Shown one piece after another: positions 11,255 through 63,570 of a DNA stretch of 64,000 nucleotides (positions are counted from its first letter, which is position 1; the number at the start of each line of letters is the position of its first letter). The stretch is taken from contig NIVC01000366.1 in NCBI GenBank assembly GCA_002269645.1, positions 1-64,000 of the forward strand, written 5' to 3'. Origin of the DNA: Macrostomum lignano (Eukaryota). Made by a program: the position numbers and the translations under genes. The notes under the pieces are model-generated. The model had not been told where the DNA came from, did no database searches, and saw only the letters and a program-made list of their open reading frames with translations.

Positions 11255-12210
11255 TCTTCAACTGTATACCCTCTGCCAGTCCTTCAGACTATACCCTCTG
11301 CCAGTCCTTCAGACTATACCCTCTGTCAGTCCTTCAGACTATACCCTCTGCCAGTCCTTCAGACTATACCCTCTGCCAGTCCTTCAGACTATACCCTCTG
11401 CCAGTCCTTCAGACTATACCCTCTGCCAGTCCTTCAGACTATACCCTCTGCCAGTCCTTCAGACTATACCATCCGCCAGTCTCAGACTATACCCTCCGCC
11501 AGTCTCAGACTATACCCTCTGCCAGTCCTTCAGACTATACCCTCTGCCAGTCCTTCAGACTATACCCTCTGCCAGTCTCAGACTATACCCTCTGCCAGTC
11601 CTTCAGACTATACCATCCGCCAGTCTCAGACTATACCCTCTGCCAGTCCTTCAGACTATACCCTCTGTCAGTCCTTCAGACTATATTCTCCGCCAGTCCT
11701 TCAAACTATACCATCCGCCAGTCTCGGACTATACCCTCCGCTAGTCTCAGACTATACCCTCCGCCAGTCCTTCAAACTATACCATCCGCCAGTCTCGGAT
11801 TATACCCTCCGCCAGTCTCAGACTATACCCTCCGCCAGTCTCAGACTATACCCTCCGCTAGTCTCAGACTATACCCTCCGCCAGTCCTTCAGACTATACC
11901 CTCTGTCAGTCCTTCAGACTATATTCTCCGCCAGTCTCGGATTATACCCTCCGCCAGTCTCAGACTATACCCTCCGCCAGTCTCAGACTATACCCTCCGC
12001 TAGTCTCAGACTATACCCTCCGCCAGTCCTTCAGACTATACCCTCTGTCAGTCCTTCAGACTATATTCTCCGCCAGTCTCAGACTATACCCTCCGCCAGT
12101 CCTTCAGACTATACCCTCTGCCAGTCTCAGACTATACCCTCCGCCAGTCCTTCAGACTATACCCTCTGCCAGTCCTTCAGACTATACCCTCCGCCAGTCT
12201 CAGACTACAC
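11255..12210. repeat. 23/25-bp minisatellite starting ~55 bp after the CUL4 stop
   Basis: CAGACTATACCCTCTGCCAGTCCTT and CAGACTATACCCTCCGCCAGTCT units. Confidence 0.95.
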
Positions 12211-32249: not shown

Positions 32250-33590
32250 ACTACTGGCTAGAGTACAGTGTCGCCAGCACGAGCTCTTGAATGTGTGTGT
32301 GCAGTAACCTATACGGCCGGGGTTTCAGCCCGCCGAGGGCGGCCGACTCCAGAAAGGTATACGCCTCGATCGGCTTGGTCCACAAGTCACATGGGCTTAA
32401 CTGAGTCGGATTAGCAGGGCAATTGAAGAGATGGGCCACAGTTTGAGGCACTAGGCGGTGAATCTCGCGTCGTTGGTCCAGCGGTTTGGAGGCAGGCTGT
32501 CCAGCATCACCTGACTGCAAGCATGTGCTGGGCACGCCTGGCGCGATCCCAGGCCGCAGCGTCGAGGACGTCCGGGGCCGGAGCCGGCGCCCATTCAGCG
32601 TTAAAATGCTCCGCGGTGAAAATGGGGGCTTTCATGAACCTGCGCGGAGGCGGGAGGCTAGCTAGGTGGTGGCACGGATGTTCCGGGCGCCTAGTGCGGA
32701 GCTTGAACTGGAGCGCAAGGAGGCGGTTGTGCTGGCGGACGGTGAGCAGCTGGACTTCACTGTGGAGGTCAGCTTCTGAAGTAAGGACCGTGTAACCAGT
32801 GATGCAACGGATCGCCGCGTTCTGAGCCGACTGAAGCAGGGTCCAGGATGACGTCGAGATAATAGGGCCCCAGACCGGCGCAGCGTAGTCGAGTAAACTT
32901 CGGCCAAGCGCTTTGAAGGTAGGTCAGAAGGAGAGTTTAGGGTCGAAAATCACGCCCAGAATTTTAGGACAGAGGGCCTGCGGCAGCTGGGAGCCATTGA
33001 TGAAGACGCGCAGTTGGCGGGAGTATTCGCGCTGATCTGGACTGAACAGAGTGGCCGTACATTTAGTGGTTGAACTCTGGAGCTTGCGCGACTCAAGGAA
33101 GGGAGCGAGATCGGCCAGGTAGCTTTTAAGCTGCTGTTCAATGGAGTTGCAACTTGGGGACGAGGCGGCAACGGTAAGGTCGTCTGCGTAGCCGATCAAG
33201 TTAGTAGCCGGATTGGCAAGCACAGGAGCTTTGGCCAGATAGAAGGCGAAAAGTAGCGGGCTGATGGTGCTGCCTTGAGGTACTCCCATGCGGACCTGCC
33301 GCCACTTCGACTTAATGTCCGGCATGATGGTATAGTTGGCGAGCCAGGCCTTAATAGCAAATCTGTTCGACCAGCTGGCAAAGGGCAGTTGTGGTTGAGT
33401 GATGTGGGCGGAAGCCATGTTGCCAGGCTGGAAGCTGTAGGTGGTCGGTCAGAAGCGATAACAGGAACTTCTCCAGAGTTTTAACGAGCGGTGAGAGAAA
33501 GGAAATCGGGCGGTACGAGGCACCATCGTCCTGCGGTTTCCCTCTTTCAGAAGTGGACAGATTAACGACTTTTCCAGACCGCCGGGATCT
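32250..33590 (-). mobile_element. 5'-truncated, internally deleted non-LTR retrotransposon (I/Jockey-supergroup-like) RT and C-terminal fragment
   Basis: YRPISFLSPLVKTLEK, QHGFRPHHSTTTAL, GVPQGSTISPLLF, YADD, LGVIFDPKLSF and C-terminal HLFNCPANPTQLSPCDLW; frameshifts present; RT subdomain 3 missing. Confidence 0.9.
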
Positions 33591-40965: not shown

Positions 40966-41485
40966 TCAGAGTTTACCTAAGCCGAGCAGACAGGCCACCA
41001 ACAGGCAGTAAGCCGTCAGGAGCAGAGTGGGGCCCGACAACCGACCGACCGAGTTGCACAGCTCCGTGTCGCAGCAGTAGGTGGTAGATGTCCTGATGCA
41101 ACGGTCCAATGGAACCCTAATGATGACATCATCCTTGACTACTTTCTGTTGGTTAGAATTGGTTTAGAAAATTATTTTGTGGTATGAAATTTTAGCAGCT
41201 TTTTTATTTGGGACAATTTGTGTAGAATCCCGACATGTTGTGTAGAACACCTTTAGTAGCATGAATTCGAATGTGAAATAAGTTCCTAGAATCCCTGCAA
41301 GCTCTTACCTGGCAGAATTTACCGGATCCAATAGATGTTTTGCCATCAACAGTTTTGCATCTCATGCAAGAATAACATTTCACGGCAAGGCAGCCGGCTA
41401 AAATACTAAAAATATAAAGTTATTAAAATATGAATTTTGCACCTGCCAGTGTGAAGCTGATTAGTAAAATTCGTAATCCGGACAT
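40966..41485 (-). CDS. Short Ly6/uPAR (three-finger, CD59-like) GPI-anchored protein A (exons 41485-41443, 41397-41309, 41145-40966)
   Basis: MSGLRILLISFTLA AGCLAVKCYSCMRCKTVDGKTSIGSGKFCQ KVVKDDVIIRVPLDRCIRTSTTYCCDTELCN SVGRLSGPTLLLTAYCLLVACLLGLGKL*; CCx4CN motif; hydrophobic GPI signal. Confidence 0.88.
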
Positions 41486-41739
41486 GATAGCAACTCTAGT
41501 GCAAGAAGCCGCTGATCTGTAAACACAATTTAAAAAATTCTCTGCAGCACATCAAATGGAACATTTACGTCGGATCTAGCGCACAAGATTTAGACTCATG
41601 TTGGTCCACTGTTACATTCCTGCACTACTAATTGCGCCCCGGTGGTCAAGTTTGCGTATAGCCCGTTTCTGCCAATTTGGACAGGTTCGTGCCCGACTCT
41701 CTACAAACTAGCAGCTTATAACTGAGCTGTGAGCTCAAA

Positions 41740-42275
41740 CACTGGTCACAGATAACTGCAAGGTATATATGCATTGATACACTGGTCACAGATAAGCAAT
41801 GCATTGATACACTGGTCACAGATAAGCAATGCATTGATACACTGGTCACAGATAAGCAATGCATTGATACACTGGTCACAGATAAGCAATGCATTGATAT
41901 ACTGGTCATAGATAAGCAATGCATTGATACACTGGTCATAGATAAGCAATGCATTGATACACTGGTCATAGATAAGCAATGCATTGATACACTGGTCATA
42001 GATAAGCAATGCATTGATACACTGGTCATAGATAAGCAATGCATTGATACACTGGTCATAGATAAGCAATGCATTGATACACTGATCATAGATAAGCAAT
42101 GCATTGATACACTGGTCATAGATAAGCAATGCATTGATACACTGGTCACAGATAAACAATGCATTGATACACGAGTCATAGATAAGCGATGCATTGATAC
42201 ACTGGTCACAGATAAGCAATGCATTGATACACTGGTCATAGATAAGCAATGCATTGATACACTGGTCACAGACAG
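41740..42275. repeat. 30-bp minisatellite (~17 units)
   Basis: CACTGGTCACAGATAAGCAATGCATTGATA units. Confidence 0.97.
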
Positions 42276-42550
42276 TCCATGAATGAATCGATAAACTTAA
42301 GTATGCAGTTTGCTGTTATATCATTTTGCTCCATTTCTGAGAATAAATACGAACTATTATTGAGCATTGGCAAGTGAAGTATCACTAAATGTATTTTTAT
42401 TCATCTAAAATGAATATTATACGCAACAATAAACAAAATATAAGCAGACATCAATTTTTGCAACAACGAGACCTTGAGTTGAGAAAGTCAAAGCGAGCGA
42501 GTTGGCCGAGTGAGCTAAAGCGTCTTGAAATGAACAATTAGCACACACAC

Positions 42551-42602
42551 CTGGCAGTAGACACCAGAAACTGTTAGACATGGCATGTCACGGCAAAGCA
42601 GT
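42551..42602 (-). pseudogene. Ly6 exon-2 pseudo-exon with a frameshifting internal deletion
   Basis: cag|AC TGC TTT GCC GTG ACA TGC CAT GT..CTA ACA GTT TCT GGT GTC TAC TGC CAG|gtgtgt (DCFAVTCH..LTVSGVYCQ); 52 nt versus 89-98 nt in paralogs. Confidence 0.7.
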
Positions 42603-43493
42603 CTGTGAAAAATATTCTTGACAATAATCAATAATTAAGTAACTAATTTGGTCATCGGGTGCTCCTGGAATTCAAACCGACTGTTACCGGAGTCAAATCA
42701 AAACCTGATGCCTGACAATTAAAAAGTCAGGACAGCTGTATACACTCTGCCTGAGCTCAGGAGTCTGCGGAATGGGCACAGTCGCGCTTTCAGAGCTGGT
42801 TGATGGGATGTTGATCTCGCCGAAGGGTGCCCGTACCCATCCTGCAACTGTAGTTATATTATTATCGTGTAATTATACGAGCGTATGGTGGCAGAGGGTA
42901 AGTTAGTTTTTCGTTATTTTTAAACCCACGAAGGCTTCTACGAGTATTTTAAAAGATAAGAGACAGTACATACACAGCTTGATGAAGTCTTCTCAATGTT
43001 TTGATTAGTGCCTTTATAATTCAACATTTATGCTCTACAAAAAATCATGTCTATATTGTTGAGTCACTGTATATAACCTATAAAATTCAAGAAAATTTCG
43101 TGTAACAATGTAGAAAACTTGCTGGCTTAATGTTACAGACTGATTATTTGTTAGAGTTGAGCAGAATATCTATCGTAGAAGTGTGTTGTTCTGATTCGTT
43201 GATGAGATAAGAATTGAGCCATAGACTAAATTTGAGGAAGGATGCGCTCAACGAGCTTAGAGAGAGTGTTGTAACTACGAGCATAGAAGCAGTTCCGGAG
43301 TCGTTTAGGAGAACAGAAGTCTCAAGACGCTACTACGCCTTCAATTGTCGCGAACTAACTCAATGTGACGTTTCAAAATTGCATATTCTTGCATATTCTT
43401 TTGCAGTCGGGATGCGTGATATTGATTTAATAAGCGAGCGCCATTATCATATAGACTATCGTTTTTTAATGCATTTTTAATGAAGCTGTTAAG

Positions 43494-44006
43494 TCACGAT
43501 AAATTGCCATAGATTATGAGCGAGAAATTTGTTTGACGCTTCAGCACGAGAGTCAAGTACCTCTGCACTCCAGCACGAATGCAGACCAACGTAGCTGGCG
43601 AATAGCAACTGCCGTCAGATTTTTTTAGACAGAAGTAAAAGAACCTTAAAAATTCGGCCAAGCGAATGTCACTGATCACGCTCACATCCACAGCACCATG
43701 CTTCTTTAAAAACTCCACGAACATTTTGCCATACAGAAACATGTGTTCTCGTGTAGTGCTCGGCAGTGACTCCAGTTCGACAACATCCATCGCACTGGGT
43801 AAATCAGATAGTTCTGGAAGCTCGACACTAGAAACCGCAGCGGCCTCATCAGCCGTCTCGATTTTAGACAGGTAGTCGATAAAATCTCCAAGAATTTCAT
43901 CGGAACTGTGGTTCACGGCGCTCAGTTCACTCAGAAAATCTAGTTCAGTAGACGAGACGCCATCTGAACTGTCGACCGGTAGATTTTTCCAGTTGATAAG
44001 AGGCAT
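43494..44006 (-). mobile_element. Crypton (DUF3504-type tyrosine recombinase) relic 1, N-terminal portion
   Basis: LAEFLRFFYFCLKKSDGSCYSPATLVCIRAGVQRYL matches the CryptonA/ZMYM-QRICH1-type region; downstream sequence is degenerate. Confidence 0.75.
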
Positions 44007-44185
44007 TTTTAATTCGATTTCTCTCGCTTCTTGCTTCTAGTTCTTAACTTCCTAACAGACTCATGGTCAACTCATGGTCGAGCTCATGGTCGAGCTTTTC
44101 TTTTAGAGAACTGTATTCTAAAAAATTGTCTATGGTCCGATTATTGCTTCGCCACTCGTGACTGTGATCATTATCCAAGTCTGAA

Positions 44186-44359
44186 ACCATAGACTTAATC
44201 TACCATTACGTGTTGGGAACAAGTTAAAGGCAGGCTAGGAAGATAATTTAAGAGAGAGAGAGAGAGACCAATGATGCGGCATTTAAGTGTTAAGTCAACA
44301 TCACGCACCCATAGCTGCAGATGAGTACACTGACTAGTGTTTCCTCTATAGTCTATGGT
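44186..44359. mobile_element. 174-bp non-autonomous mini-element with 10-bp inverted termini
   Basis: ACCATAGACT (44186-44195) / AGTCTATGGT (44350-44359), flanked by CTGAA direct repeats (TCTGAA if the terminal T is shared). Confidence 0.7.
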
Positions 44360-44966
44360 CTGAAAGACCTGATGTCAATGGTTTAAAAGGACAATAATAT
44401 GTTGCGGACAGTTTAAAGACAGTTTAATCAAATTGGTAAAAGAGCGATTAAGATTTTCAAAAACTAAGCTGTCACCCTCTACTGAACTATTCTGCTCTGT
44501 CTTGGTGTGACTTCATTGCTATCAAGTTAGAGTCATTACTGCGAGAATGGACTTTCCAGCGAAAGTCTCTGATCAGCTAGACAATTTTGTGTATTTCGGC
44601 AGAATACATTTGCTACATGCAGTTTTGACATTAGTATCATCTTATTTCATGTAAATAAAAGTATCATAAAAGAAACGATTGCCGATAAATAATACGCATT
44701 CCACGAGCGAGTTAATGGCTACAGTGAAACCAGCGCTTGCTAATGTACTCTATTGTATACCAGTGGTATGCGAATCGATATCTAATATAACAGCAGTGGG
44801 AATAGCGTTGCCTTAATTAAAGCAGAATACTCAGAATCAGGTTGTCTTTGTGCTGTTGACCTACATGCACTCATTTGGAAACAAACACTCGTGGTAGAAA
44901 GTCCTCGATAAATTCCCAGTGACGGTGCTCAACCGGATTCTGAGCATTCATCCTCTGCAGATCTGC

Positions 44967-47150
44967 TCAGAGGTTGCTCAAGCTGAGCAGACAGCCCGCG
45001 AGCAGACCGGCAGCCGTCAGGAGGCCCGACAGAGGCGGACCCGACATCCGACCGACCGAGTTGCACAGGTCCGTATCGCAACAGAACGAGTAGGAAGACT
45101 TGACGCAAAGCATCACCGGACCACGAACAGTCTTACCAGCAGCGACTATTTTCTGTTGATTGGTTGAATTAGCATAACTTGCCAAAATGTACCAGCGTCG
45201 TGTAAAACACTTTATAAAGCACGAATTCAAATGCTCGTAAGTTAAAGGGGGTTGTAGCTTAAAATGGTTAGAGCGTCGGACTCCCGACTGAAAGGTCGAG
45301 GGTTCGATTCCCGATCCACTCTGAAAAATTCGGATAAACTCGGAAGAAACTTAATTCTGCATTGCTTCAGTTCACCCAGCTGTAAAATGGGTGCTAGCAT
45401 TAACTGGGGTAATTTAGGGTGTATGTCGCGATCCTCCAGTCCTTGGACTGGAGCCTCCAGATGCGCCGCGCAATAGCTGTGGCTGAGCTATCGGTTGAAA
45501 ATCTGCCCATTCGGACAGGCTTAATCAATGTAACAGTAAAGAACGGATACAAGTGCACCAATGTTTTGACTGAGGGCGCTGTGCACGAGTAGCCGTTCTT
45601 CACCGATATTGTATGATTTTGAAGGCGTTTGCACCATAGATATTTGAAGCGTGCAACAATCAGTTTGGGACAGCGTGCACCAATTATACATGGCTGAACG
45701 CTCGAAATACGCTCGTATCTATGGTCCAAAAATGAAAGTGTAGACATGAAGTTGTAGGTCAAATAGCAAAGGTTCATAGCTAGCTATACAAAGTAGCCTG
45801 CTAAAGCTCAACGCGCGACTGCGACCGAAGGCAAATAAATGGCTTTCATTTTGGATTCAACAACCGGCAGTCGTATCGGACTATTGCACATTTCGCAAGG
45901 TGACGTTGTTGGAGCTTCAAGTTCCCAGTTGGGCGAACGGGTTGAGCAAGAGTCCGCAATGCGATGCATGCTTGACGATCTCATTCAATTGGACGCCGAT
46001 GAAGTTGAAGCGCTATTAAATGGTGGCGATTCGGAGCAATCCCTTTTAAACGAGATGGATGAAATTCAACTGGACAGCACACCGAGGTCTATTCGAATTC
46101 AGGAAAACTGGGCTGTACGCAAGTTCAATGAAGTGCTCATTAGTAAGAAGTACGCGTGCAACTTGGAGACGGCTGACATAGTGCAGTTAGTAACTGGTCT
46201 GCGAGTATTCTATGCGTTCTTGCGTAAAATTGACGGAGGGTTATACGCCCCTGCGTCTCTAGTTACTGTTCGTGCTGGATTATTTCGATATCTACTCGGG
46301 ACACGCGGGCTGAACATTTTTGAAGACCCATAACGCTTCGCTAAAGCCAATTTGCAACTGAAAGCCACTGCAGCCATGTTCGTCAAGACAGAAGTGACCC
46401 GACGAAAGTGCAACAAGAGTCGTATACTACGTGATGGCAATTTGGACTGTGTGGACGCGAGTGGTTCCGAAAGTTGAAAACGAAATCGTTTATAAGATCC
46501 ACTGTAGATGGCAAGCGCGCTTTTAAGTTGACTCCAATGGAGACGAAGAATGTCCGGGGAAGTTTGGAGACGCCGACTGCAGAAGACAGAAAGCAGAGCA
46601 TGATTTTCGCAACTGGTGAGCGTGGGTGTCCGTATGAATGCGTCGATCTCTATCTGAGGAAGGTTGAAGAAGCAAAGAGAAAGGAAGGTGTAAAAAGCTC
46701 TGTTGTGTTTCTACGTCCCTGGGTACGTGAGCTACAACAGTCGTGGTACTCCAAAATGATACAATAATTTTTATTATTTTATTTTCAAATAAGTACCTCT
46801 ATAGATAAGGAAAAACTTATGCGAGATCGGAAACAGCTAGAGTCGGAGGGGGAGACATGAGTAGAATACAAAGCAAAGAAGGAGAGCCTACTGCAAAGAT
46901 TAGCGCTACAAACACTCACCTGGCAGTAGGTACCTGAAGCTGTGAGTGTGTTGCTGCCAACAGTTTCGCAGTCAGCGCAGACGTAACAAAGCACCGCAAG
47001 GCAGTCAGTGAGAGAAGCTAAAAGTTTCGTAACACAATCGGAATGAATTTCGGATTTTACCAGGTATGCCGAGAAATATGAAATAAAAAATTATTTAACT
47101 AACACACCTGACAATGTAAGAATAATTAGCAGAGTTCGAATGCCAGACAT
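44967..47150 (-). CDS. Short Ly6/three-finger GPI-anchored protein B (exons 47150-47108, 47017-46920, 45152-44967)
   Basis: MSGIRTLLIILTLS ASLTDCLAVLCYVCADCETVGSNTLTASGTYCQ KIVAAGKTVRGPVMLCVKSSYSFCCDTDLCN SVGRMSGPPLSGLLTAAGLLAGCLLSLSNL*; same exon phases as protein A. Confidence 0.9.
45247..45497 (+). mobile_element. tRNA-derived SINE, same family as 22510-22773, in Ly6-B intron 2
   Basis: GGTTCGATTCC B-box; shared TTCACCCAGCTGTAAAATGGGTG and CAGATGCGCCGCGCAATAGCTG segments. Confidence 0.82.
45839..46767 (+). mobile_element. Crypton (DUF3504-type tyrosine recombinase) relic 2, antisense inside Ly6-B intron 2
   Basis: LRVFYAFLRKIDGGLYAPASLVTVRAGLFRYL, then after a stop and frameshift ETKNVRG..SMIFATGERGCPYECVDLYLRK..FLRP..WY; catalytic C-terminus absent. 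Confidence 0.82.
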
Positions 47151-48109
47151 GATAGCGATTGAGGTGCAATTTGCAGCTGGTCTGCATTTATGGATTTCTG
47201 AGACAGAATTTGAACTGACGCTGCCGACAAATCCTATATACTAAAAATGAGTTGTCTGTGGGTAGGTAGGTAGGTATGCGATAGATTTCAGAAAAATCCA
47301 ATATACTAAAAATCAAAACTATGTACCTACCTATCTATCTATCTATAGGAACCTTCGTTTAACTTGACTTTGCGTGGTCGGAATTTTCTGGGGTTTTCTG
47401 CATTCGATGCGTATTGATGATGCGCTGGTACACAACATCTTCTTCTTCTAATATACTAAAAATGGTCTGTTTGTGTGTGCGTGTGTGTGTGATCGATTTT
47501 AGCAAAAACGGCTCAACCGATTTTCTTCGAATTTGCACCATTCGATCAGAAATTTTTCCGTGACGGTACATGCATCGTTGCTAAGAAATTGCTCGATGCT
47601 AAAGGGATTAAATATTCGAAAAACATGCTTTTTTGCAAAGGTCAAGCAAAACTTTTCGACTTGAAACGCACTGTAAAAATGCTAGAGAAAAAACTGACTG
47701 GTTGAATTCTGATTCTGAAATAGATTGCATCACAATACACTTTATTTATCGTCTGTGTACTGGCTGAATTTGACACTCAATTGAATTGCGTCACAGCTTT
47801 GAGTGTGAAAGCATAGTGCAGTACTGAATTTATATTACGTAACCATATTGTTAGCTTTCATAGACACTGGTACTGACTTGCCTAAGAAATTGATTATGTC
47901 ATAACTGCTTCGTGAGACTTTTTACTCTACCTGACTTGGTGTGAGTGTTGAATTATATAAGTGGTACAAATTCACTGATAACTTCGATGAGAGCTAGCCT
48001 AGAGCTGAACAGACCAGACTGCTAATGCAGCGACCTAGGTTCGAATCTAAGTAGTAGTGTAAAATTTTTTATTAAAAGCTTTTATTAAAGGACTAAATAA
48101 AAACACTTA

Positions 48110-50240
48110 GATTACTGCACTCGATAAGCTAAGGATTATTGCTCTTGGCAAACCAAGGAATACTGCACTCGATAAGCCAAGGATTATTGCTATTAATAAA
48201 CCAAGGATTACTGCACTCAATAAACCAAGGACTATTGCTATTAATAAACCAAGGATTACTGCACTCAATAAACCAAGGACTATTGCTCTTGGCAAACCAA
48301 GGATTACTGCACTCGATAAGCCATGGATTATTGCTATTAATAAACCTGCAAGGATTACTGCACTCGATAAGCCAAGGATTATTGCTATTAATAAACCAAG
48401 GATTACTGCACTCGATAAGCCAAGGATTATTGTAAACCAAGGATTACTGCACTCGATAAACCAAGGATTATTGCTATTAATAAACCAAGGATTATGCACT
48501 TGGCAAACCAAGGATTACTGCACTCGATAAGCCAAGGATTATTGCTATTAATAAACCAAGGATTACTGCACTCAATAAGGCATGGATTATTGCTATTAAT
48601 AAACCAAGGATTACTGCACTCGATAAGCCAAGGATTATTGCTATTAATAAACCAAGGATTACTGCACTCGATAAGCCAAGGATTATTGCTATTAATAAAC
48701 CAAGGATTACTGCACTTGGCAAACCAAGGATTACTGCACTCGATAAGCCAAGGATTATTGCTATTAATAAACCATGAATTACTGCACTCAATAAACCAAG
48801 GACTATTGCTCTTGGCAAACAAAGGATTACTGCACTTGATTTATCAAGGATTATTGCTATAAATAAACCAAGGATTACTGCACTCGATAAGCCAAGGATT
48901 ATTGCTATTATTAAACCAAGGATTACTGCACTCGATAAGCCATGGATTATTGCTATTAATAAACCAAGGATTACTTACTGCACTTGGCAAACCAAGAATT
49001 ACTGCACTTGATAAGCCATGGATTATTGCTATTAATAAACCAAGGATTACTGCACTCGATAGCCAAGGATTACTGCGCTTGATAAGCTTGGCTACATGTA
49101 TAGGATTATTTCTATCCAGGGATGCTTGCTATTTAGGGATTCTTGCTATGTGCAGGATGCTTGCTATCTGGAAGGATGCTTCTACATTATTTGGGGTATG
49201 CTTGCTATCTGCAAGATGCTTGCTATCTGCAAGATGCTTGCTATCTGCAAGATGCTTGCTATCTGCAGATGCTTGCTATCTGGGTGGATGCTTGCTAGGA
49301 GTATTAGGGGATGCTTGCTACTGGGGGATGCTTGCTGTCTTGGGAATATTTTCTATTTAGGGGTAATGACTAAAATTCATGAGAGCTAGCCTAGAGGTAA
49401 ACAGACTAAACTGCTAAATGCAGGGACGATGGTTCGAATTTTTAGAGAGTAGAGTTTTTTTAATTAAAGCTTTTTAACGCCAAGACAAAAAAAATTATGG
49501 AAGCGTCATGTAAACAATCATACAAGCGTCATGTAAACAATCATAGAAGCGTCATGTAAACAATCATAGAAGCGTCATGTAAAAATCATAGAAGCGTCAT
49601 GTAAACAATCATAGAAGCGTAATGTAAACAATCATAGAAGCGTCATGTTAAAATCATAAAAGCGTCATGTAAACAATCATAGAAGCGTCATGTAAACAAT
49701 CATAGAAGCGTCATGTAAACAATCATAGAAGCGTCATGTTAAAATCATAAAAGCGTCATAAAAAATCATAGAAGCGTCATGTAAAAATCATAGAAGCGTA
49801 ATGTAAACAATCATAGAAGCGTCATGTTAAAATCATACAAGCGTCATGTAAACAATCATACAAGCGTCATGTAAAAAATCATAGAAGCGTCATGTAAAAA
49901 AATCATAGAAGCGTCATGTTAAAATCATAAAAGCGTCATAAAAAATCATAGAAGCGTATGTAAAAATCATAGAAGCGTCATGTAAAAATCATAGAAGCGT
50001 CATGTAAACAATCATAGAAGCGTCATGTAAACAATCATAGAAGCGTCATGTAAACAATCATAGAAGCGTCATGTAAAAAATCATAGAAGCGTCATGTAAA
50101 AATCATAGAAGCGTCATGTAAAAATCATAGAAGCGTCATGTAAAAAATCATAGAAGCGTCATGTAAACAATCATACAAGCGTCATGTAAACAATCATAGA
50201 AGCGTCATGTTAACATAGAAGCGTCATGAAAAAATTATAG
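48110..50240. repeat. Arrays inside Helitron 1: 48-bp CCAAGGATT dimer (48110-49070), 18-bp GATGCTTGCTATCT (49130-49340), 23-bp GAAGCGTCATGTAAA (49500-50240)
   Basis: Visible tandem periodicity. Confidence 0.95.
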
Positions 50241-51191
50241 AAGCCTCATATAAAAACTAATGGAAGTGTCATTTAAAAAATAAATAAGCATCATGGAAGA
50301 ATAAAAGAAGCGTAACGTATAAATCAAAAGAAGCGTCATGTCAGACATGAAAGAAGTGTCATGTAAAATTTAAATGAACCTATTGTGCTGTGCTGGGGAG
50401 AATCACTGAGACGTCAAGGCTCACAGAGAATAACTGAGATTACAGGGGGGTTTCTGAGATGTTAAAGCAAAAGTCAGAAGCTACTTCAAAGTACATGTAC
50501 TTTACTTAAGTTTTTTTATTGCATTCTTTGTTGGCTTGCCACGGTGGGGGGGGGCGCTGATAGAAGAAGAGTCATGTAAAAATAAAAGGAGCACTATGTA
50601 TACATAAAATAAAAGTCATGTCAAAGTTAAAAGATTCATTTGGGAATTGCTACGATGTCAAAGCTTGGAGGGAATCGTTATAGTGCTGTGATTCTTAAAG
50701 AAGGAATCACTTAAATGCCAAGGCTTAGGGAAGAAGAATTGCTGTGATTTCAAGGCTTTAGGTTGGGTGAAAGTTAGGTTTACGTCAGGTTTGGGTTGAG
50801 GGTTAGATTTTAGCGCGTTTCAAGGTTAACAGGGGATTTTTTAGATTTCAAGGTTTATGGGGGGCATCGCTGACATGTCAAGGCTTACGAGGGGAATCTA
50901 TCTATCTATCTATCTATAGCTGAGATGTCAAGGCTCACGGGGAATAAATGAGATGTCAAGGCTAATGTCAGAAGCTACATGTAGTTTATTGGAAAAAAGT
51001 TATTACATTATTTGTTGGCTCCTCACGGGAGGGATCGCTGATAGAAAAAGCGTAATGTAAAAAAAGAAGCTTCATGTCAAAGTTAAGAGATTCATTTGGG
51101 AATCCCTACGATGTCGAGGCTTGCAGGGAATCGCTATAATGCTGTAGTAGTGCTATAGACTCTTAGAGAGAATTACTGAAATTTCAATGCT

Positions 51192-51227
51192 TTAGGGTTA
51201 GGGTTAGGGTTAGGGTTAGGGTTAGGG
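51192..51227 (+). repeat. Interstitial telomeric repeat (TTAGGG)6
   Basis: Six perfect units followed by TTAAGG TTAG. Confidence 0.9.
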
Positions 51228-51590
51228 TTAAGGTTAGAAAGTAGACAGATTTTTTAAGATTTCAAGGCTTATGGGAGCATTGCTGAGATGTCAAGGGGGG
51301 AGTTGATATGTTATGGCTTGTGGGGGGGGGGATTGCTGACATGTCAAGGCTTACAAGGGTACTGGTAGCGTACTGAAGCATACTGGTAGAAGTAGCTCTG
51401 AAAGAAGGCAAGTATGGTTGAATTTCAATGTCTGTTATAAAATTCTGCACAAACATGTTTTATTGGTACATAAGCCTGGAATTAAAATGAGAATTCGATT
51501 CCTAGCCCCCCTCCCTAAGAATTTTTTTTCACTTTAAAGGATTCGTCCCTTGCTTATTGGCCACCCCGAAGGGGGGCGCTAGATTGCTAG

Positions 51591-54500
51591 TCCTATATAC
51601 TAAAAATGAGTTGTCTGTATGTGGGTAGGTAGGTAGGTAGGTATGCGATAGATTTCAGAAAAAATGGCTCAACCGATTTTCTTCAAACTTGCACCATTCG
51701 ATCAGAAATTTTCCTGGGACGGTACATGCATCTTGGCTAAGAAATTTCTCAATGTTAAAGGGATTAAATATTCGAAAAACATGCTTTTTTGCGAAGGTCA
51801 AGCAAACTTTTCGACTTGAAATGCATTGTAAGAATGCTAGATAAAAACCTGACTGACTGAATTTCAATTCTGATAAAGATTGCATCACAACAAATTGAAA
51901 ACAGTGCCGAAGAAATGCACACACAACTTGATTGAAATTGCGTAACAATATTGCTAACTTAAATTGACACTGATACTGGCTGACTGAGAAATTGATTATG
52001 TCATAATTTGCTATATTTGCTATATTGCTATTTGCTATATTTGCTATAAGAATTTAATTATAAGGGCCACAATTCATGTTCTCCAATTGACAAGAGATAG
52101 CATAGATGCGAACAGACTGGACTGCTAATGTAGGGACCTGGGTTCGAGTCTTAGTAGTGCAAAAAGATTCTTTTATTAAAACACCTTAAAAACACGAAAT
52201 GCTGAACACAAAAAAGCATAAGGTCAAACATTATAGAGCCACCATGTCGAACATATATGTGACTTCATGTCGAACATATATGTGACTCCATGTCGAACAT
52301 TAAAGAGCCGTCATGTCAAACATTAAAGAGCCACCGTGTCTAACATTAAAGAGCCACCATGTCAAACAAAAAAGAGCCACCATGTCTAACATTAAAGAGC
52401 CACCATGTCGAACACTAAAGAGCCACCATGTCGAACATTAAAGAGCCATCATGTCAAACATTAAAGAGCCACGGTGTCTAAAATTAAAGAGCCACCATGT
52501 CAAACAAAAAAGGCCATCATGTCTAACATTAAAGAGCCACCATGTCGAACATTAAAGAGCCACCATGTCGAACATTAAAGAGCCACCATGTCAAACATCA
52601 AAGAGCCACAATGTCAAACATTAAAGAGCCACAATGTCAAACATTAAAGAGCCATCATGTCTAACATTAAAGAGCCAACATGTCAAACACTAAAGAGCCA
52701 CCATGTCGTGTCTAACATTAAAGAGCCACCATGTCAAACATTAGAGAGCCACCATGTCAAACAATAAAGAGCCACCATGTCGAACATACAAGAGCCACCA
52801 TGTCAAACAAAAAAAAGCCACCATGTCGAACATTAAAGAGCCACCATGTCGAACATACAAGAGCCACCATGTCAAACATAAAAGAGCCACCACGTCAAAC
52901 ATAGAAGAGCCACCATGTCAAACATTAAAGAGCCACCTTGTCAAACATTAAAGAGCCACCATTTCAAACCTAAAAGAGCCACCTTATCAAACATCATAGA
53001 GCCACCATGTCGAACATTAAAGAGCCACCATGTAGAACATAAAAGAGTCACCATGTAAAACATAAAAAAGCCACCATGTAAAACATAAAAGAGCCACCAT
53101 GAAGAACTTTAAGAGCAACCATGTCGAACATTAAAGAGCCACCATGTCGAACATTAAAAAGCCACCATGTCAAACATTAAAGAGCCACCATTTCAAATCT
53201 AAAAGAGCCACCATGTCGACCATTAAAGCCACCATGTCAAACATAACAGAGCCACCATGTCAAACATAAAAGAGTCATCATGTCAAATATTAAAGAGCCA
53301 CCTTGTCAAACATAAAAGAGCCACCATGTCAAACATATATGTGACTCTATGTCAAACAGTAAAGAGCCACCATGTCAAACGTAAAAGAGCCACCATGTCC
53401 AACATAAAAGAACCACTATGTCGAACATAGAAGAGCCACCATGTCGAACACTAAAGAGCCATAATGTCGAACTTTAAAGAGCCATCATGTCAAACATTAA
53501 AGAGCCACGGTGTCTAAAATTAAAGAGCCACCATGTCAAACAAAAAACGCCATCATGTCTAACATTAAAGAGCCACCATGTCGAACATTAAAGAGACACC
53601 ATGTCAGACATAAAAAACCCGAATCAAACATAAAAGAGCTACCATGTAGAACATCAAAGAGCCACGATGTCAACATTAAAGAGCCACCATGTCAAACATT
53701 AGAGAGCCACCATGTCAAACAATAAAGAGCCACCATGTCGAACATACAAGAGCCACCATGTCAAACATAAAAGAGCCACCATGTCTAACATTAAAGAGCC
53801 ACCATGTCGAACATAAAAGATACACAATTTCAAACGTAAAAGTAAGCGTCATGCCAATTTTAAAGGAGTCACTACAGAGCTAAGGAAATTGTTGCACTAG
53901 CTACTTATTGTCTGGTGGATGCTTACTATTTGGGGATGCTTGCTATCTGGGGGATGCTTGCTATCTGGGGGATGCTTGCTATCTGGGGAAATATTAAAGA
54001 GCCACTATGTCGAACATTAAAGAGCCACCATGTCGAACATAAAAGAGCCACCATGCCAAACATAAAAGAGCCACCATGTCGAACATTAAAGAGCCAGCAT
54101 GCCAAACATAGAAGAGCCAGCATGCCAAACATAGAAGAGCCACCATGTCGAACATAAAAGAGCCACCATGCCAAACATAAAAGAGCCACCCTGTCGAACA
54201 TAAAAGAGCCACCATGCCAAACGTAAAAGAGCCACCATGTAGAACATAAATGAGCCACCATGTCAAACATTAAAGATACACAATTTCAAATGTATAAGTA
54301 AGCGTCATGCCAATTTTAATGGAGCCACTATAGAGCTAAGGAAATTGTTGCACTAGCTACTTATTGTCTGGTGGATGCTTACTATTTGGGGATGCTTGCT
54401 ATCTAGGAGTGGGGATGCTTGCTATCTGGGGGATGCTTGCTATCTGGGGGATGCTTGCTATCTGGGGGATGCTTGCTATCTGGGGAAATATTAAAGAGCC

Positions 54501-55682
54501 ACTATGTCGAACATTAAAGAGCCACCATGTCGAACATTAAAGAGACACCATTTCAGACATAAAAAAACCCGAATCAAACATAAATTAGCTACCATGTAGA
54601 ACATAAAAGAGCCACGATGTCAACATTAAAGAGCCACCATGTCCAACATAAAAGAGCCACCATGTCAAACATTAAAGAGCCACCATGTCAAACATTAAAG
54701 AGCCACTATGTCAAACATTAAAGAGCCACCATGTCGAACATTAAAGAGTCATCATGTCAAACATAAAAGATACACAATTTCAAACGTAAAAGTAAGCGTC
54801 ATGCCAATTTTAAAGGAGCCACTATAGAGCTAAGGAAATTGTTGCACTAGCTACTTATTGTCTGGTGGATGCTTACTATTTGGGGATGCTTGCTATCTAG
54901 GAGTGGGGATGCTTGCTATCTGGGGGATGCTTGCTATCTGGGGAAATATTAAAGAGCCACTATGTCGAACATTAAAGAGCCACCATGTCGAACATAAAAG
55001 AGCCACCATGCCAAACATAAAAGAGCCACCATGTCGAACATTAAAGAGCCACCATGCTAAACATTAAAGAGCCACCATGTGAAACATATACATGACTCCA
55101 TGTCGAACATTAAAGAGCCACCATGTTAAACATAAAAGAGACACCATTTCAAATGTAAAAAGCAGCTTCATGCGAAACATAAAGGGGCCACTATAAAGCG
55201 AAGGATATTATTGCACTAGCTACTTGTTGTCTTTTTGGATGCTTGCTATTTAAGGATAGATTACTGCTATCAGGGGGATGCTTGCTATTGGAAGGATGCT
55301 TGCTATCTGGGGGGGGGGATTCTTGCTATCTGGGGGATGCTTGCATGCTGTCTGGGGATGCTTGATATTAGGGAGGCAAGAGGCTTGCTCTTGGGGGGGT
55401 ACTTGCTATCTTGGGGGGAGGGGTTGCCATCTGGATGATGCTTGCTATCTGGAAGATGCTTTTTGCTATTGTATTTGGGGGAGCTTGCTATCTGGGGGAT
55501 GCTTGCTATCTGGGGGGATGCTTGCTATGGGGGAGATGCTTGCATGCTGTCTGGGGATGCTTGCTGTCTTGGGATGTTTTCTTTTTAGAGGAAATGTCTG
55601 CTGTTTTTTCGTTGTCTATTTGTTACTTGTAAAGAACAAAGATTCTATCCAGATGTCCCCCATCGGGGGCGAAGATTGCTAG
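51591..55682 (+). mobile_element. Non-autonomous Helitron copy 2 (~4.09 kb), head-to-tail with copy 1
   Basis: Starts TCCTATATACTAAAAATGAG directly after the CTAG of copy 1; ends with hairpin GTCCCC-ATC-GGGGGC and CTAG|T at 55682. Confidence 0.85.
52230..55150. repeat. 22-23 bp AAAGAGCCACCATGTC(G/A)AACATT array with interleaved duplicated blocks, inside Helitron 2
   Basis: Visible periodicity; recurring block at ~53817, 54273, 54767. Confidence 0.95.
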
Positions 55683-56455
55683 TATCCACTATAAATACGA
55701 GTATTTGTTTATACCAAGATTTACTATCAATGCAAACTGACCGCACAGGCAGAAATCGTAAAACAATATTAACGGTATAGTCGCTATTTTAGTCAGCACA
55801 GCTTTATACCGACGCAAAAGTGTTAATTGTAAATTGGAAAAATAAAACTCGAGTGGGCTTACAGCAAGATGCCTCTGTTTTAGTCCAGAAGATCTGTACT
55901 GGTGGAGTTTCCTAGTCTAATTTACATTGCGGCCAGCAGTTCAAGCTCGGCAAGGATGGGGATCGAGGGGCAGCCGGGGGGGGGGGAAGGAAGTTTGGCA
56001 GACTCTACCGAGTACAATTGTACGAATTGGGATAGATGGAGCACGAGTACTTGAGAAAGAGACGATTGGGAAAGGAGGGCAGACAAGGCCACAGCCTATA
56101 CTGTATGTGGCATGCAGTTCATCCGTGTACAAGCGTAGCCTAAAATGAATCTACATCCATTAAGTGCACACGCTCTGCTGCTTTGCCTCTAAAAGCAGAT
56201 CAGGCATGGTACGAGTAACAGTACTGAAAAATAATATCTGATTCTGGTAGCTTGCACGGCATTTCCTGTCTTTTAGAATCGCACAGCACTGCACATACCG
56301 AATAGGACAGCAATTTAGAAAAAAAAATTACTATATTACGCTCGCATAAACTATCAAGAAATGCCTCGCTTCTAGAAGCAAAATAGGAACGAATTCGTCT
56401 CCCTCCAGCCGATTCTTCTATTCGAAGAATTGTCAGGTCGCCTCTGTTTTTCAAC

Positions 56456-58038
56456 ATGGCCATTTTAAAAGATTCGGTAAACTTAATTTTTGTCACGCTT
56501 TTTAGCATAGCAAATTTGACCAGTGGTCAAACAGTCAGTAGTGACAGCAGCGCAAACTCCTCGGCACTTTTAATCACCTGTTATAGCTGTCAGAATTGTC
56601 CAACTGTTAATCATAATTCGACACCACAGGCTACAGGACGATACTGCGTTGTAAGTTTATTTGGAAAACTGCATGAGTTTAAAGAAGTTGAAACTAGTTT
56701 TTTATGTATTGTGTTGCTTCATTGGCTGAATAATAAATTACATATAGGAATTGGTACAGGCTTTAATTTGAATGTCTTCTCGAGTTTGTGTCAAACAGAA
56801 TAAATAACTCCTTTGTGTCGACGCCAATTGTGACGAATCTGAATTAGAAACCCAATATGACGTCTAAAACACCCAATGTGACGCTCTCAAGATCGACACC
56901 CAATGTAATGTCTCTCCAGTCACCCAATGTGACGTCTCTCTAGTCACCCAATGTGACATCTCTCAAGACACCCAATGTGACGTCTCTCAAGACACCCAAT
57001 GTGACGTCTCTCCAGTCACCCAATATGACGTCTCTCCAGTCACCCAATGTAATGTCTCTCCAGTCACCCAATGTGACGTCTCTCTAGTCACCCAATGTGA
57101 CATCTCTCAAGACACCCAATGTGACGTCTCTCAAGACACCCAATGTGACGTCTCTCCAGTCACCCAATATGACGTCTCTCCAGTCACCCAATGTGACGTC
57201 TCTCTAGTCACCCAATGTGACATCTCTCAAGACACCCAATGTGACGTCTCTCCAGTCACCCAATGTGACGTCTCTCAAGACACCCAATGTGACTACTCTC
57301 AAGACACCCAATATGACGTCTCTCCAGTCACCCAATGTGACGTCTCTCAAGACACCCAATGTGACTACTCTCAAGACACCCAATATGACGTCTCTCCAGT
57401 CACCCAATGTGACGTCTCTCAAGACACCCAATATGACGTCTCTCCAGTCACCCAATGTGACGTCTCTCCAGTCACCCAATGTTACGTCTCTCAAGACACC
57501 CAATGTGACGTCTCTCAAGACACCCAATGTGACGTCTCTCAGACACCCTATGTGACGTCGCTCCAGTCATCTAATTGGACGTCTCTCTAATCACAGTGAG
57601 CCATCTCTCGAGTAAACCCAATGTAACGTCTCTTAAGGCACCCATATCATGACTTTTAAGTCCCAACAGGTGTAAGGTATCCTACAGGTATCCTATAAGA
57701 TGAATTCATTTATTTTAGATACATTTATGTCCATGTAGTAAGAAATGTACTCACTTATCCTACTTATGTACTTAAACCTACATGCAATTAAATTCTCAAC
57801 ACAAATCCAGAAACGAGTGTCCAAAACCGGGGACATCATCAGACTGGCTATCAACGGTGTCTGCTATGAGAACGACTCCACATTCTGCTGTCAGGAGAGT
57901 CTCTGCAACAGTTCGTCGCCCAAAGTCTTGTCTAGTTACCATGGTAACTGTTCCTGCAAGCTGAGGCGCTTCTTGTGGAATTTTTCCGGAATTTTGCCGC
58001 TTTCGTTGGTGTATTTTATTAAGCAGTGTGAACTCTAA
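56456..58038 (+). CDS. Short Ly6/three-finger protein C (exons 56456-56650, 57811-58038)
   Basis: Signal MAILKDSVNLIFVTLFSIANLTSG; ITCYSCQNCPTVNHNSTPQATGRYCV|KRVSKTGDIIRLAINGVCYENDSTFCCQESLCN; hydrophobic tail; phase-0 intron at the same position as in A and B. Confidence 0.88.
56855..57640. repeat. 24-bp minisatellite in the Ly6-C intron
   Basis: CACCCAATGTGACGTCTCTC(AAGA/CAGT) units. Confidence 0.95.
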
Positions 58039-62072: not shown

Positions 62073-62604
62073 GCAAGGGGGGGTTTCACAAACTCAAATT
62101 TTCACAATGTTGAAAGCACCTGCCTTTATAAGGTCAAAATTTCAAAATGTAGAAAACTCAAATAACAGCCACTTTCACAAGGTCAAAACTTCATAAGGTC
62201 GAACTTTCACAACATTGAAAACTTTAGCAAGGGACTTCATAAGGTCAAAATTTCACAAGGTTGAAATTTCATAACATCAAAAACTCAAATAGCAGCCACT
62301 TTCACAAGGTCAAAACTCCATAAGGTCAAAATTTCACAACATAGAAAATTATTGCATAGTTCTTGTTATATTAAGTTTTTGACATTGTGAAATTTTGAGC
62401 TTATGAAGTTTCAACCTTATGAATGTGGCTGCTATTTAAGTTTTTGATGTTATGAAATTTTGACCTTGTGAAATTTTGACCTTATGAAGTCTCTTGATAA
62501 AGTTTTCGGTGTTGTGAAATTTTGACCTTGTAAAGTTTTGACCTTGTGAAATAATTTACTTTTTGACATTGTGAAATTTCAACCTTTGTGTTAAAGCACC
62601 CCTC
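62073..62604. mobile_element. Foldback (Mutator-like) MITE built of short internal repeats
   Basis: Left arm AAGGTCAAAATTTCACAA repeats mirrored by TTGTGAAATTTTGACCTT in the right arm; G-rich/C-rich ends. Confidence 0.75.
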
Positions 62605-62649
62605 ATAGTGGACTAGGGGCTGAGCCCAATGGCCTGCAAGTCAATCAGA

Positions 62650-63570
62650 AATGTATCATTTAGCATCACAGTTTGGCCTTAGCCATGGCGCAGGCACTCA
62701 GTGGGCTGATGCAGGAGAGCCAGTGCCAGAAGATTTTGCTTGCTCCGGCCATGGCTTCTTAGGCAATGGCCAAGTAACATCTGACAATGTTTATGGATAG
62801 TGCAGCTTAGCGCCAGAACACTAATGCGAGTCATCAGGTCCCTAGTTGGCAGTATCAGGGTAGTGCACACCCAGGGCATAGTGGATCTGCAACCTATAGT
62901 GAGCATCCAGGGCTTGCTGTTGCGTCACAGTCATTGGCAAAGCCTCTATGCCATATAGGAGAATCAGCTCAATGGCAATGCAGAAAAGGCACATCTTTAG
63001 GTCGTCACAAGTGGTTAAATTGAAGATGCTCCTGAGCATATGTGCCGCATGCCAGACCTGAGTCTTCCTGTCAAAGACAATGGTGTTGAGGCTCAAGACA
63101 AGGGAGCCGAGGTAGCGGAAGTCCTTGCACACCTTGTCAACTTCTCCATTTGGAAGAGCTAGCGCAGGGGTAGTTGTAATGCCCACGTGGAGCACCTTAG
63201 TCTTGGATGCATTGATCACCAAGCCAACTTGGGTGCCCTCTTCATAGAGTCTAGACAGAGCCCATTGCCCATTGGGCAGTAGCCGGATTGCAACACAGAA
63301 GGGCAATGTCGTCAGCATAGGCAAGAGCAGATAGCAAGATGGCGAGATGTCAGGAGCTTTGGTGTAAGACTAGCACATAGCCATCATCTTCATGCAGGCA
63401 TTGGCGAAGAACATAGTCTACCATAACAATGAAGAGTAGTGGAGCCAGCGTGTCACCCTGAAGGATGCCGGAAGTTGTGTTAAATTCTTCAGTGGGGCCG
63501 TCACTTGACTGAACAAATGCTCTTGAATCGCTGTGAATCGCTCTTGAATTAATTTTAATTACTGGTAGCA
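62650..63570 (-). mobile_element. Degenerate non-LTR (RTE-like) reverse-transcriptase fragment, copy 2
   Basis: GILQGDTLAPLLFIVMVDYVL, AYADD region, GLVINASKTKV, DFRYLGS, ILLYGIEA; frameshifted. Confidence 0.85.

Follow-up and report, generated by a model that had tools for sequence, protein, structure and literature searches.

Eight-cysteine proteins of Macrostomum lignano, probable derived Ly6/uPAR domains without the Cys4-Cys6 pair, with relatives in bdelloid rotifers

We analysed a 64,000-nucleotide stretch of the genome of the flatworm Macrostomum lignano (assembly GCA_002269645.1, contig NIVC01000366.1, positions 1 to 64,000; hereafter the window), which carries three intact genes, G1 (40966-41485, reverse strand), G2 (44967-47150, reverse strand) and G3 (56456-58038, forward strand). 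Each encodes a small protein with an N-terminal signal peptide, a domain of exactly eight cysteines and a hydrophobic C-terminal tail. These domains are probably derived Ly6/uPAR (LU) domains, descended from the flatworm-type ten-cysteine LU domain (C-x2-C-x2-C…C-x2-C…RGC-x3-C…CC-x4-CN) through loss of both partners of the Cys4-Cys6 pair. The same variant is present in further M. lignano genes and in bdelloid rotifers. Some members are already flagged as LU-like by automatic UniProt names, two M. lignano clusters bearing the UniRef name 'UPAR/Ly6 domain-containing protein'; what is new is the missing core cystine and its spread over two phyla.

The domain reads C-x2-C-x2-C-x14/15-(F/Y)C-x16/18-C-x7-CC-x4-CN in all three proteins, and the span from Cys1 to the final Asn is 54 amino acids (aa) in G1 and G2 and 57 aa in G3, within products of 103, 108 and 140 aa, respectively. 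Both ends of the domain carry known signatures. The N-terminal Cys1-x-x-Cys2, which has been used as a Ly6 criterion (PMC4492491), is present as CYSC in G1 and G3 and as CYVC in G2, and CC-x4-CN, the sole strictly conserved motif of three-finger proteins (TFPs) (PMC8904931), is present as CCDTELCN, CCDTDLCN and CCQESLCN in G1, G2 and G3, respectively. In a six-frame scan CC-x4-CN occurred only three times in the window, each time downstream of the N-terminal motif on the same strand, and tblastn revealed no further copy or fragment of the family in the window, introns included. The pattern is therefore not a chance occurrence, since it was found at the three gene loci only. The exon models and the six-frame scan thus bore out the initial annotation, which had described three genes sharing this eight-cysteine pattern.

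The exon borders (Table 1) were fixed by script, and GT..AG was found at every splice junction of the three genes. The first exons of G1 and G2 are 43 nucleotides long (MSG(L/I)R…), resemble each other including the 5' flank, and end within the signal peptide at a phase-1 intron. The LU archetype is a three-exon gene whose domain is preceded by a phase-1 intron (PMC6600238). G1 and G2 fit this plan, having a signal-peptide exon, two domain exons and a phase-1 first intron, whereas in G3 the signal peptide and the first LU half are fused on one exon. The intron within the LU domain is in phase 0 in all three genes; the initial annotation had given it this phase and had placed it directly after the fourth cysteine, but its exact place is one codon further (FCQ|K, YCQ|K and YCV|K). 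The gene of a ten-cysteine LU protein (P0020) of the schistosomatid Trichobilharzia szidati carries a phase-1 intron upstream of its domain, and its phase-0 intron likewise falls a single codon past Cys5 (CAACG|K). Both intron positions and phases are identical in G1 and G2, in the Adineta and Rotaria genes of the family and in this Trichobilharzia gene, and G3 shares the phase-0 intron.

LU/three-finger homology rests on four independent lines, namely the P0020 profile comparison, solved structures, Pfam matches of rotifer members and the gene structure described above. First-pass relatives were Macrostomum (M. lignano) proteins only (E 3.9e-33 to 1e-13). When a family profile of 21 members was compared with the ten-cysteine P0020, hhalign returned a probability of 96.8% and E 2.6e-10, and G3 alone was 36% identical to P0020 (BLASTP E 4e-9). 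Against the PDB, the family profile matched the three-finger protein 3hh7 (E 3.8e-5), SLURP-1 (0.018) and PSCA (0.021), and nearly all weaker matches were three-finger proteins too. Among the rotifer members, P0040 cleared the cut-off of 25.3 bits on PF21947, a three-finger model of Pfam, with 26.5 bits, and P0015 fell 0.2 bit short on Toxin_TOLIP (PF00087; 21.0 against 21.2). By a strict signature that requires the 1-5, 4-6 and 9-10 cystines, with ten plesiotypic cysteines or eight where 2-3 is lost, G1-G3 are not canonical LU domains.

The plesiotypic LU network consists of the bonds 1-5, 2-3, 4-6, 7-8 and 9-10 (PMC6600238), and the flatworm LU pattern is C-x2-C-x2-C…C-x2-C…C-x3-C…CC-x4-CN (PMC3812095). 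In the hhalign alignment with P0020, Cys4 stands opposite the G of 'SGKFC' and Cys6 opposite the P of 'RVPLDRC', and 'RGPVMLC' of G2 is aligned against 'RGCLPSC' of P0020. Similarly, HMMER placed Cys6 of SLURP-1 ('TRSCSSSC') and of PSCA ('SKGCSLNC') on a non-cysteine column of the family. Because the position of the phase-0 intron is shared with the ten-cysteine gene, the fourth cysteine of G1-G3 corresponds to plesiotypic Cys5. Taken with the shared intron, the Cys4 and Cys6 alignments therefore identify the missing pair as Cys4-Cys6, i.e. C19-C39 of CD59, in agreement with what the initial annotation had proposed; its observation that the usual RGC reads RVP, RGP or RLA holds as well. Cysteines for the bonds 1-5, 2-3, 7-8 and 9-10 are kept and both cysteines of 4-6 (B2) are gone in G1-G3 and in 24 relatives. 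The lost cysteines are replaced by G/N at the Cys4 site and by P, A or hydrophobic residues at the Cys6 site, and both sites are part of the modelled exons, the former at -3 of Cys5 and the latter at -4 of Cys7.

An exhaustive hidden Markov model (HMM) search over 1.84 billion representative proteins gave 15 matches below E 1e-3. These were more M. lignano genes, bdelloid proteins from Adineta vaga, A. ricciae, A. steineri and Rotaria socialis, one ten-cysteine schistosomatid LU protein and one artefact, the 1402-aa P0009, which was discarded as a translated tandem repeat. A second HMM search added further Adineta and Rotaria members. Four M. lignano paralogues (P0002, P0003, P0010 and P0012) are contiguous intronless open reading frames (ORFs) in the same assembly, each with eight cysteines. 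A profile built from Macrostomum sequences only ranked the rotifer eight-cysteine proteins above nearly all ten-cysteine proteins of flatworms, and the comparison suggests one old loss of Cys4-Cys6 rather than two separate losses in flatworms and rotifers. Since genes of this variant, alike in their intron positions, have multiplied in both M. lignano and bdelloids, they would form an old subfamily that selection maintains, rather than an accident of one locus. The distinct compact subfamily postulated by the initial annotation is thus real, but it is confined neither to this locus nor to flatworms. More tentatively, and with somewhat less than even confidence, we propose an ancient spiralian LU branch, comprising macrostomids and bdelloids, that may have lived without Cys4-Cys6 for hundreds of millions of years; either its fold would be stable without the disulfide between the two halves, as a hinged 54-aa scaffold, or its eight cysteines would have re-paired into an unseen topology.

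Residue statistics were taken over 27 domains, i.e. those of the three window genes and the 24 relatives. Exactly eight cysteines were present in 27/27 domains, lysine at +2 of Cys5 and arginine or lysine at -6 of Cys7 each in 26/27, tyrosine or phenylalanine directly before Cys5 in 23/27, and a Cys5-to-Cys7 spacing of 16 residues in 22/27. The former Cys4 column holds G, N, S and D, and the former Cys6 column A, I, L, Y and P. The Cys2-Cys3 spacing is x5 and x7 rather than x2 in two rotifer members, and such variability is expected for a local loop-1 bond. Between G1 and G2, DNA similarity is limited to the exons and short adjoining flanks, the third exons being 77% identical, and the introns show none. 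The ratio of nonsynonymous to synonymous substitution rates (dN/dS) for this pair was 0.52 overall, with 0.12 for the signal peptide (70% amino-acid identity), 0.61 for the mature domain (44%) and 0.78 for the tail (68%). The mature part is thus clearly less conserved than the signal peptide and tail, as the highly divergent loops of the initial annotation implied, but with dN/dS of 0.61 positive selection between G1 and G2 was not shown. Divergence is fast in the loops while the framework stays, which is typical of LU families.

Several observations nevertheless weigh against a derived LU domain with the four remaining canonical bonds. The initial annotation had proposed a search with UPAR_LY6 and QVR models as a check, and a Pfam scan of the G1-G3 products reached no LU-clan threshold, the best being CD59 at E 0.51. 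A collection of 15 billion proteins held no exact match to the G1-G3 protein models, and no transcript or annotated protein matched them exactly. AlphaFold gave models of low confidence, the predicted local distance difference test (pLDDT) being 45.7 with a 7-sequence alignment and 53.3 with a 21-sequence alignment. A Foldseek search of the PDB gave nothing significant; its top matches were three-finger proteins at template modelling (TM) scores of <=0.54 and E >=0.6. The G3 tail is long, contains extra Cys and KLRR, and is weakly hydrophobic (1.39). We infer both the three-finger fold of G1-G3 and their disulfide connectivity, the latter from homology, and the glycosylphosphatidylinositol (GPI) anchoring is predicted from the tails, weakly so for G3.

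The low-confidence models bear on an alternative in which the eight cysteines re-pair into a non-canonical connectivity and thereby a new topology, much as those of PMF (Plethodontid modulating factor), a pheromone of salamanders, have done. Re-pairing has a precedent in PMF and SPF (PMC8904931), PMF (2mhy) is among the weak PDB matches of the family, and neither AlphaFold model settles the fold. We consider re-pairing unlikely here, since the two missing cysteines are both partners of one canonical bond and complete canonical pairs are left, while the ten-cysteine relatives share the spacings, CC-x4-CN and the K/R residues of the framework. The Cys2-Cys3 spacing (x2, x5, x7) also varies as a local loop-1 bond would, and the strands that AlphaFold predicts (3-5, 19-21, 24-30, 33-39 and 48-51, in the model of pLDDT 53.3) fit the five-strand plan of TFPs. 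A second alternative, likewise quite improbable, is that the three genes include copies, above all G3, which are not expressed or are decaying within a repeat-rich region and make no functional protein. The missing exact transcript or protein match, the odd tail of G3, the minisatellites and transposon fragments in which the region is rich, and a frameshifted copy in an M. lignano cluster would all agree with decay. G1-G3, however, have unbroken reading frames, with start codons, splice sites and eight cysteines in place, the similarity of G1 and G2 is confined to exons and short flanks with dN/dS below 1, and the pattern of the family is retained in two phyla.

The gene models could also be incomplete, small extra exons supplying the two cysteines of an ordinary ten-cysteine LU domain. 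Introns do exist within the LU domain, and those of G2 and G3 are 1.2-1.8 kb long. The intron of G1, however, is 163 bp long and has no candidate exon; in the 1.77 kb intron of G2, which holds transposon-like ORFs, no family-like micro-exon was seen by tblastn. The four intronless M. lignano paralogues align colinearly and without a gap across the exon junction of the window genes and have the same eight cysteines, rotifer genes with introns of 52-53 bp are likewise eight-cysteine genes, and the sites of the missing cysteines lie inside exons already in the models. The micro-exon reading, which the initial annotation had named as a possible objection, is effectively refuted by these comparisons and we regard it as extremely improbable. 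The derived LU domain without Cys4-Cys6 remains the probable interpretation of G1-G3.

Comparison with known LU proteins shows what is shared and what is peculiar. The platyhelminth Ly6/CD59-like proteins (SmCD59.1-7/SmLy6A-K and P0020) have in common with the window proteins the C-x2-C-x2-C start, the lysine two residues past Cys5, R-G-x before x3-Cys7 and CC-x4-CN; the signal peptide, the hydrophobic tail and the phase-1 and phase-0 introns are also shared (PMC3812095). However, the described flatworm Ly6 proteins keep ten cysteines, except for domain 1 of SmLy6D, which is without 7-8 (PMC4492491), whereas the window proteins are without Cys4 and Cys6, and finger 3 of the window proteins is very short by comparison, with 7 residues between Cys7 and Cys8. 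B1, B2 (i.e. 4-6) and B4 have been listed as bridges conserved throughout the superfamily, with ten cysteines in all platyhelminth members (PMC3812095). The eight-cysteine pattern is thus not already common among described flatworm Ly6 proteins (PMC3812095, PMC4492491), which the initial annotation had named as its other possible objection. Ten cysteines were also required for inclusion in the SmLy6 survey (PMC4492491), and that survey would therefore have missed an eight-cysteine group. Our searches of the literature for Macrostomum or rotifer Ly6 proteins, M. lignano gene identifiers and eight-cysteine Ly6 variants found nothing relevant.

The bdelloid eight-cysteine proteins (Adineta vaga, A. 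ricciae, A. steineri and Rotaria spp.) have the same cysteine pattern, the 16-residue Cys5-Cys7 spacing, the K/R framework, the introns and the hydrophobic tail, but differ in longer fingers 1 and 3 (domains of 60-72 aa) and in a conserved 'C-N-D-P-F' after Cys3. Human CD59, Lynx1, SLURP-1 and PSCA resemble the window proteins in having a signal peptide, one LU domain, usually a GPI signal, a three-exon gene, Cys1-x2-Cys2 and CC-x4-CN, and the profile matches of SLURP-1 and PSCA to the window family are weak but in register. The human single-domain LU proteins, however, have all five plesiotypic disulfides, as against four pairs in the window proteins, and the internal intron of vertebrate LU genes lies at the tip of loop 2 (PMC6600238), whereas that of the window genes lies at its base. 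LU domains can drop one plesiotypic bond and still function, the loss of 2-3 being frequent and that of 7-8 rare; loss of 4-6 is not mentioned in the LU review (PMC6600238). Short snake three-finger toxins are without 2-3, and the N-terminal domains of uPAR, C4.4A and Haldisin without 7-8 (PMC6600238), but the window genes lose another bond. PMF, in turn, is a small, fast-evolving, eight-cysteine TFP descendant with non-canonical disulfides (PMC8904931). It is a secreted vertebrate pheromone that keeps the eight 'core' cysteines and re-pairs them, in contrast to the window proteins, which are without two core cysteines and keep the loop-1 pair.

If the derived LU reading is right, the signal peptide would send each protein into the endoplasmic reticulum, where four disulfides would form, 1-5 and 2-3 within the half of the domain that comes from the first LU exon and 7-8 and 9-10 within the other half, from the second. 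With the remaining bonds so distributed, the lost 4-6 would therefore have been the only cystine linking both halves, and homology predicts that the two exon-encoded halves are now joined by the loop-2 hairpin alone. Packing of two residues probably makes up for the lost cystine, namely the aromatic one conserved ahead of Cys5 and the small or hydrophobic one that has taken the Cys6 site. In G1 and G2, a 'CN-S-V-G-R-x-S-G-P' stretch with small residues is followed by a hydrophobic end of 17-19 aa, and the Kyte-Doolittle hydropathy of the tail is 2.47 and 2.15, respectively, as compared to 1.39 in G3; near 'CN-S-V-G', a GPI anchor may replace the C-terminal signal of G1 and G2. With such an anchor, the domain would face outwards from the cell membrane and act as a small binding module, whose fast-diverging fingers may recognise a membrane or extracellular partner, like the Lynx1/QVR-type receptor or channel modulators or the tegumental Ly6 proteins of schistosomes. 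Receptor or channel modulation, or a role in the surface coat, is our reasoned guess at its function, made by analogy with these proteins.

Two more specific assignments found no support. In CD59, complement inhibition involves D24, W40, R53, E56 and the C39-W40-L54 groove; the equivalent of C39 is absent from G1-G3 and no Trp follows (RVPLD, RGPVM, RLAIN). The ten-cysteine flatworm relatives are also without the functional residues of CD59 and did not inhibit complement (PMC3812095). A CD59-like function is unlikely because the C39-W40 site is impossible here and because those relatives were inactive. Membership of the QVR/Sleepless group was similarly unsupported, there being no match to Pfam QVR (PF17064) in G1-G3 and a best value of E 0.079 in the family (rotifer P0041); the UniRef name 'Protein quiver' borne by P0039 is automatic.

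Table 1. Exons of the three eight-cysteine genes and the parts of the proteins that they encode
Feature	Coordinates	Strand	Content
G1, exons	41485-41443, 41397-41309, 41145-40966	-	
G1 exon 1	41443..41485	-	start codon and most of signal peptide (MSGLRILLISFTLA); GT donor, then phase-1 intron
G1 exon 2	41309..41397	-	end of signal peptide and N-terminal LU half (CLAV|KCYSCMRCKTVDGKTSIGSGKFCQ) with Cys1, 2, 3 and 5; then phase-0 intron (gtaaga)
G1 exon 3	40966..41145	-	C-terminal LU half (KVVKDDVIIRVPLDRCIRTSTTYCCDTELCN) with Cys7-10; after Cys10, putative omega site (SVG), hydrophobic GPI-signal-like tail, stop codon
G2, exons	47150-47108, 47017-46920, 45152-44967	-	
G2 exon 1	47108..47150	-	start of signal peptide (MSGIRTLLIILTLS); then phase-1 intron
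G2 exon 2	46920..47017	-	N-terminal LU half (…CLAVLCYVCADCETVGSNTLTASGTYCQ); then phase-0 intron (gtgagt)
G2 exon 3	44967..45152	-	KIVAAGKTVRGPVMLCVKSSYSFCCDTDLCN, then GPI-signal-like tail, stop codon
G3, exons	56456-56650, 57811-58038	+	
G3 exon 1	56456..56650	+	signal peptide, Ser/Asn-rich linker, N-terminal LU half (…ITCYSCQNCPTVNHNSTPQATGRYCV); then phase-0 intron (gtaagt)
G3 exon 2	57811..58038	+	KRVSKTGDIIRLAINGVCYENDSTFCCQESLCN, then atypical long, Cys-containing, weakly hydrophobic tail, stop codon

Several other members of the family deserve mention. On M. lignano contig NIVC01001655.1 (L002), a tandem trio of intronless eight-cysteine LU genes (10001-10327, 11668-12024 and 14446-14877) lies within 5 kb; the gene annotation omits the second copy, and the third has a frameshift after 'YCVKAD'. 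The intronless state of such copies suggests that retroposition produced part of the M. lignano expansion, the window genes keeping the ancestral introns. In bdelloids, P0013 (A. vaga UJR32359.1) has two tandem domains, both without Cys4 and Cys6, and P0042 (Rotaria sp.) is without the hydrophobic tail and may be secreted. A0A1I8HDV2, an M. lignano 'reverse transcriptase domain-containing protein' of 1850 aa, clusters at 90% with the 108-aa LU protein P0001, probably because an LU gene and a retroelement next to it were joined in one gene model.

Around the LU genes the window is rich in repeats. Large minisatellites with units of 23-30 bp lie between or within them (41769-42272, 48110-49085, 49489-50368, 52223-55191 and 56870-57644); a 23-bp unit spans about 3 kb between G2 and G3, and the 24-bp minisatellite at 56870-57644 fills most of the G3 intron. 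ORFs at 43494-44006 (reverse strand) and 45839-46333 (forward strand) are alike and weakly resemble a QRICH1/Crypton-type N-terminal domain (Pfam QRICH1 E 0.08-0.15); the latter lies inside intron 2 of G2 and is probably a transposon remnant. Just upstream of the acceptor of G2 exon 3, a tRNA-like stretch (45242-45320, reverse strand; 'ggaatcgaaccc…') looks like a tRNA-derived short interspersed nuclear element, and scans of the window with ARAGORN and Rfam were empty, this stretch included. Elsewhere, the exons of a cullin gene were found at 6029-11199 (forward strand), with Pfam Cullin and Cullin_Nedd8 matches, cullin-4-like best matches and introns full of minisatellites; the best database match of its last exon was 64% identical, only short fragments being among the matches listed. 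An exon at 16959-17360 (reverse strand) matched a cyclic-nucleotide-binding domain at E 2.9e-5, which does not reach the Pfam cut-off, and 32924-33418 (reverse strand) carries a reverse-transcriptase fragment (RVT_1 E 3.5e-13). Repeat DNA of the window is 86-94% identical to M. lignano contigs, and 19228-21068 and 62603-63512, both 86% identical to such contigs (L003 16345-18224 and L005 12353-13257, respectively), presumably are shared transposable elements.

A maintained, multi-gene subfamily without 4-6 in two phyla would mean that the rule of an invariant LU core (1-5, 4-6 and 9-10) is not absolute, and its 54-residue domain would offer a natural minimal scaffold for studying what holds the three-finger fold together. 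Counts of LU genes in invertebrates may accordingly be underestimates. For Macrostomum, a laboratory model of regeneration and sexual selection, the family provides candidate surface molecules.

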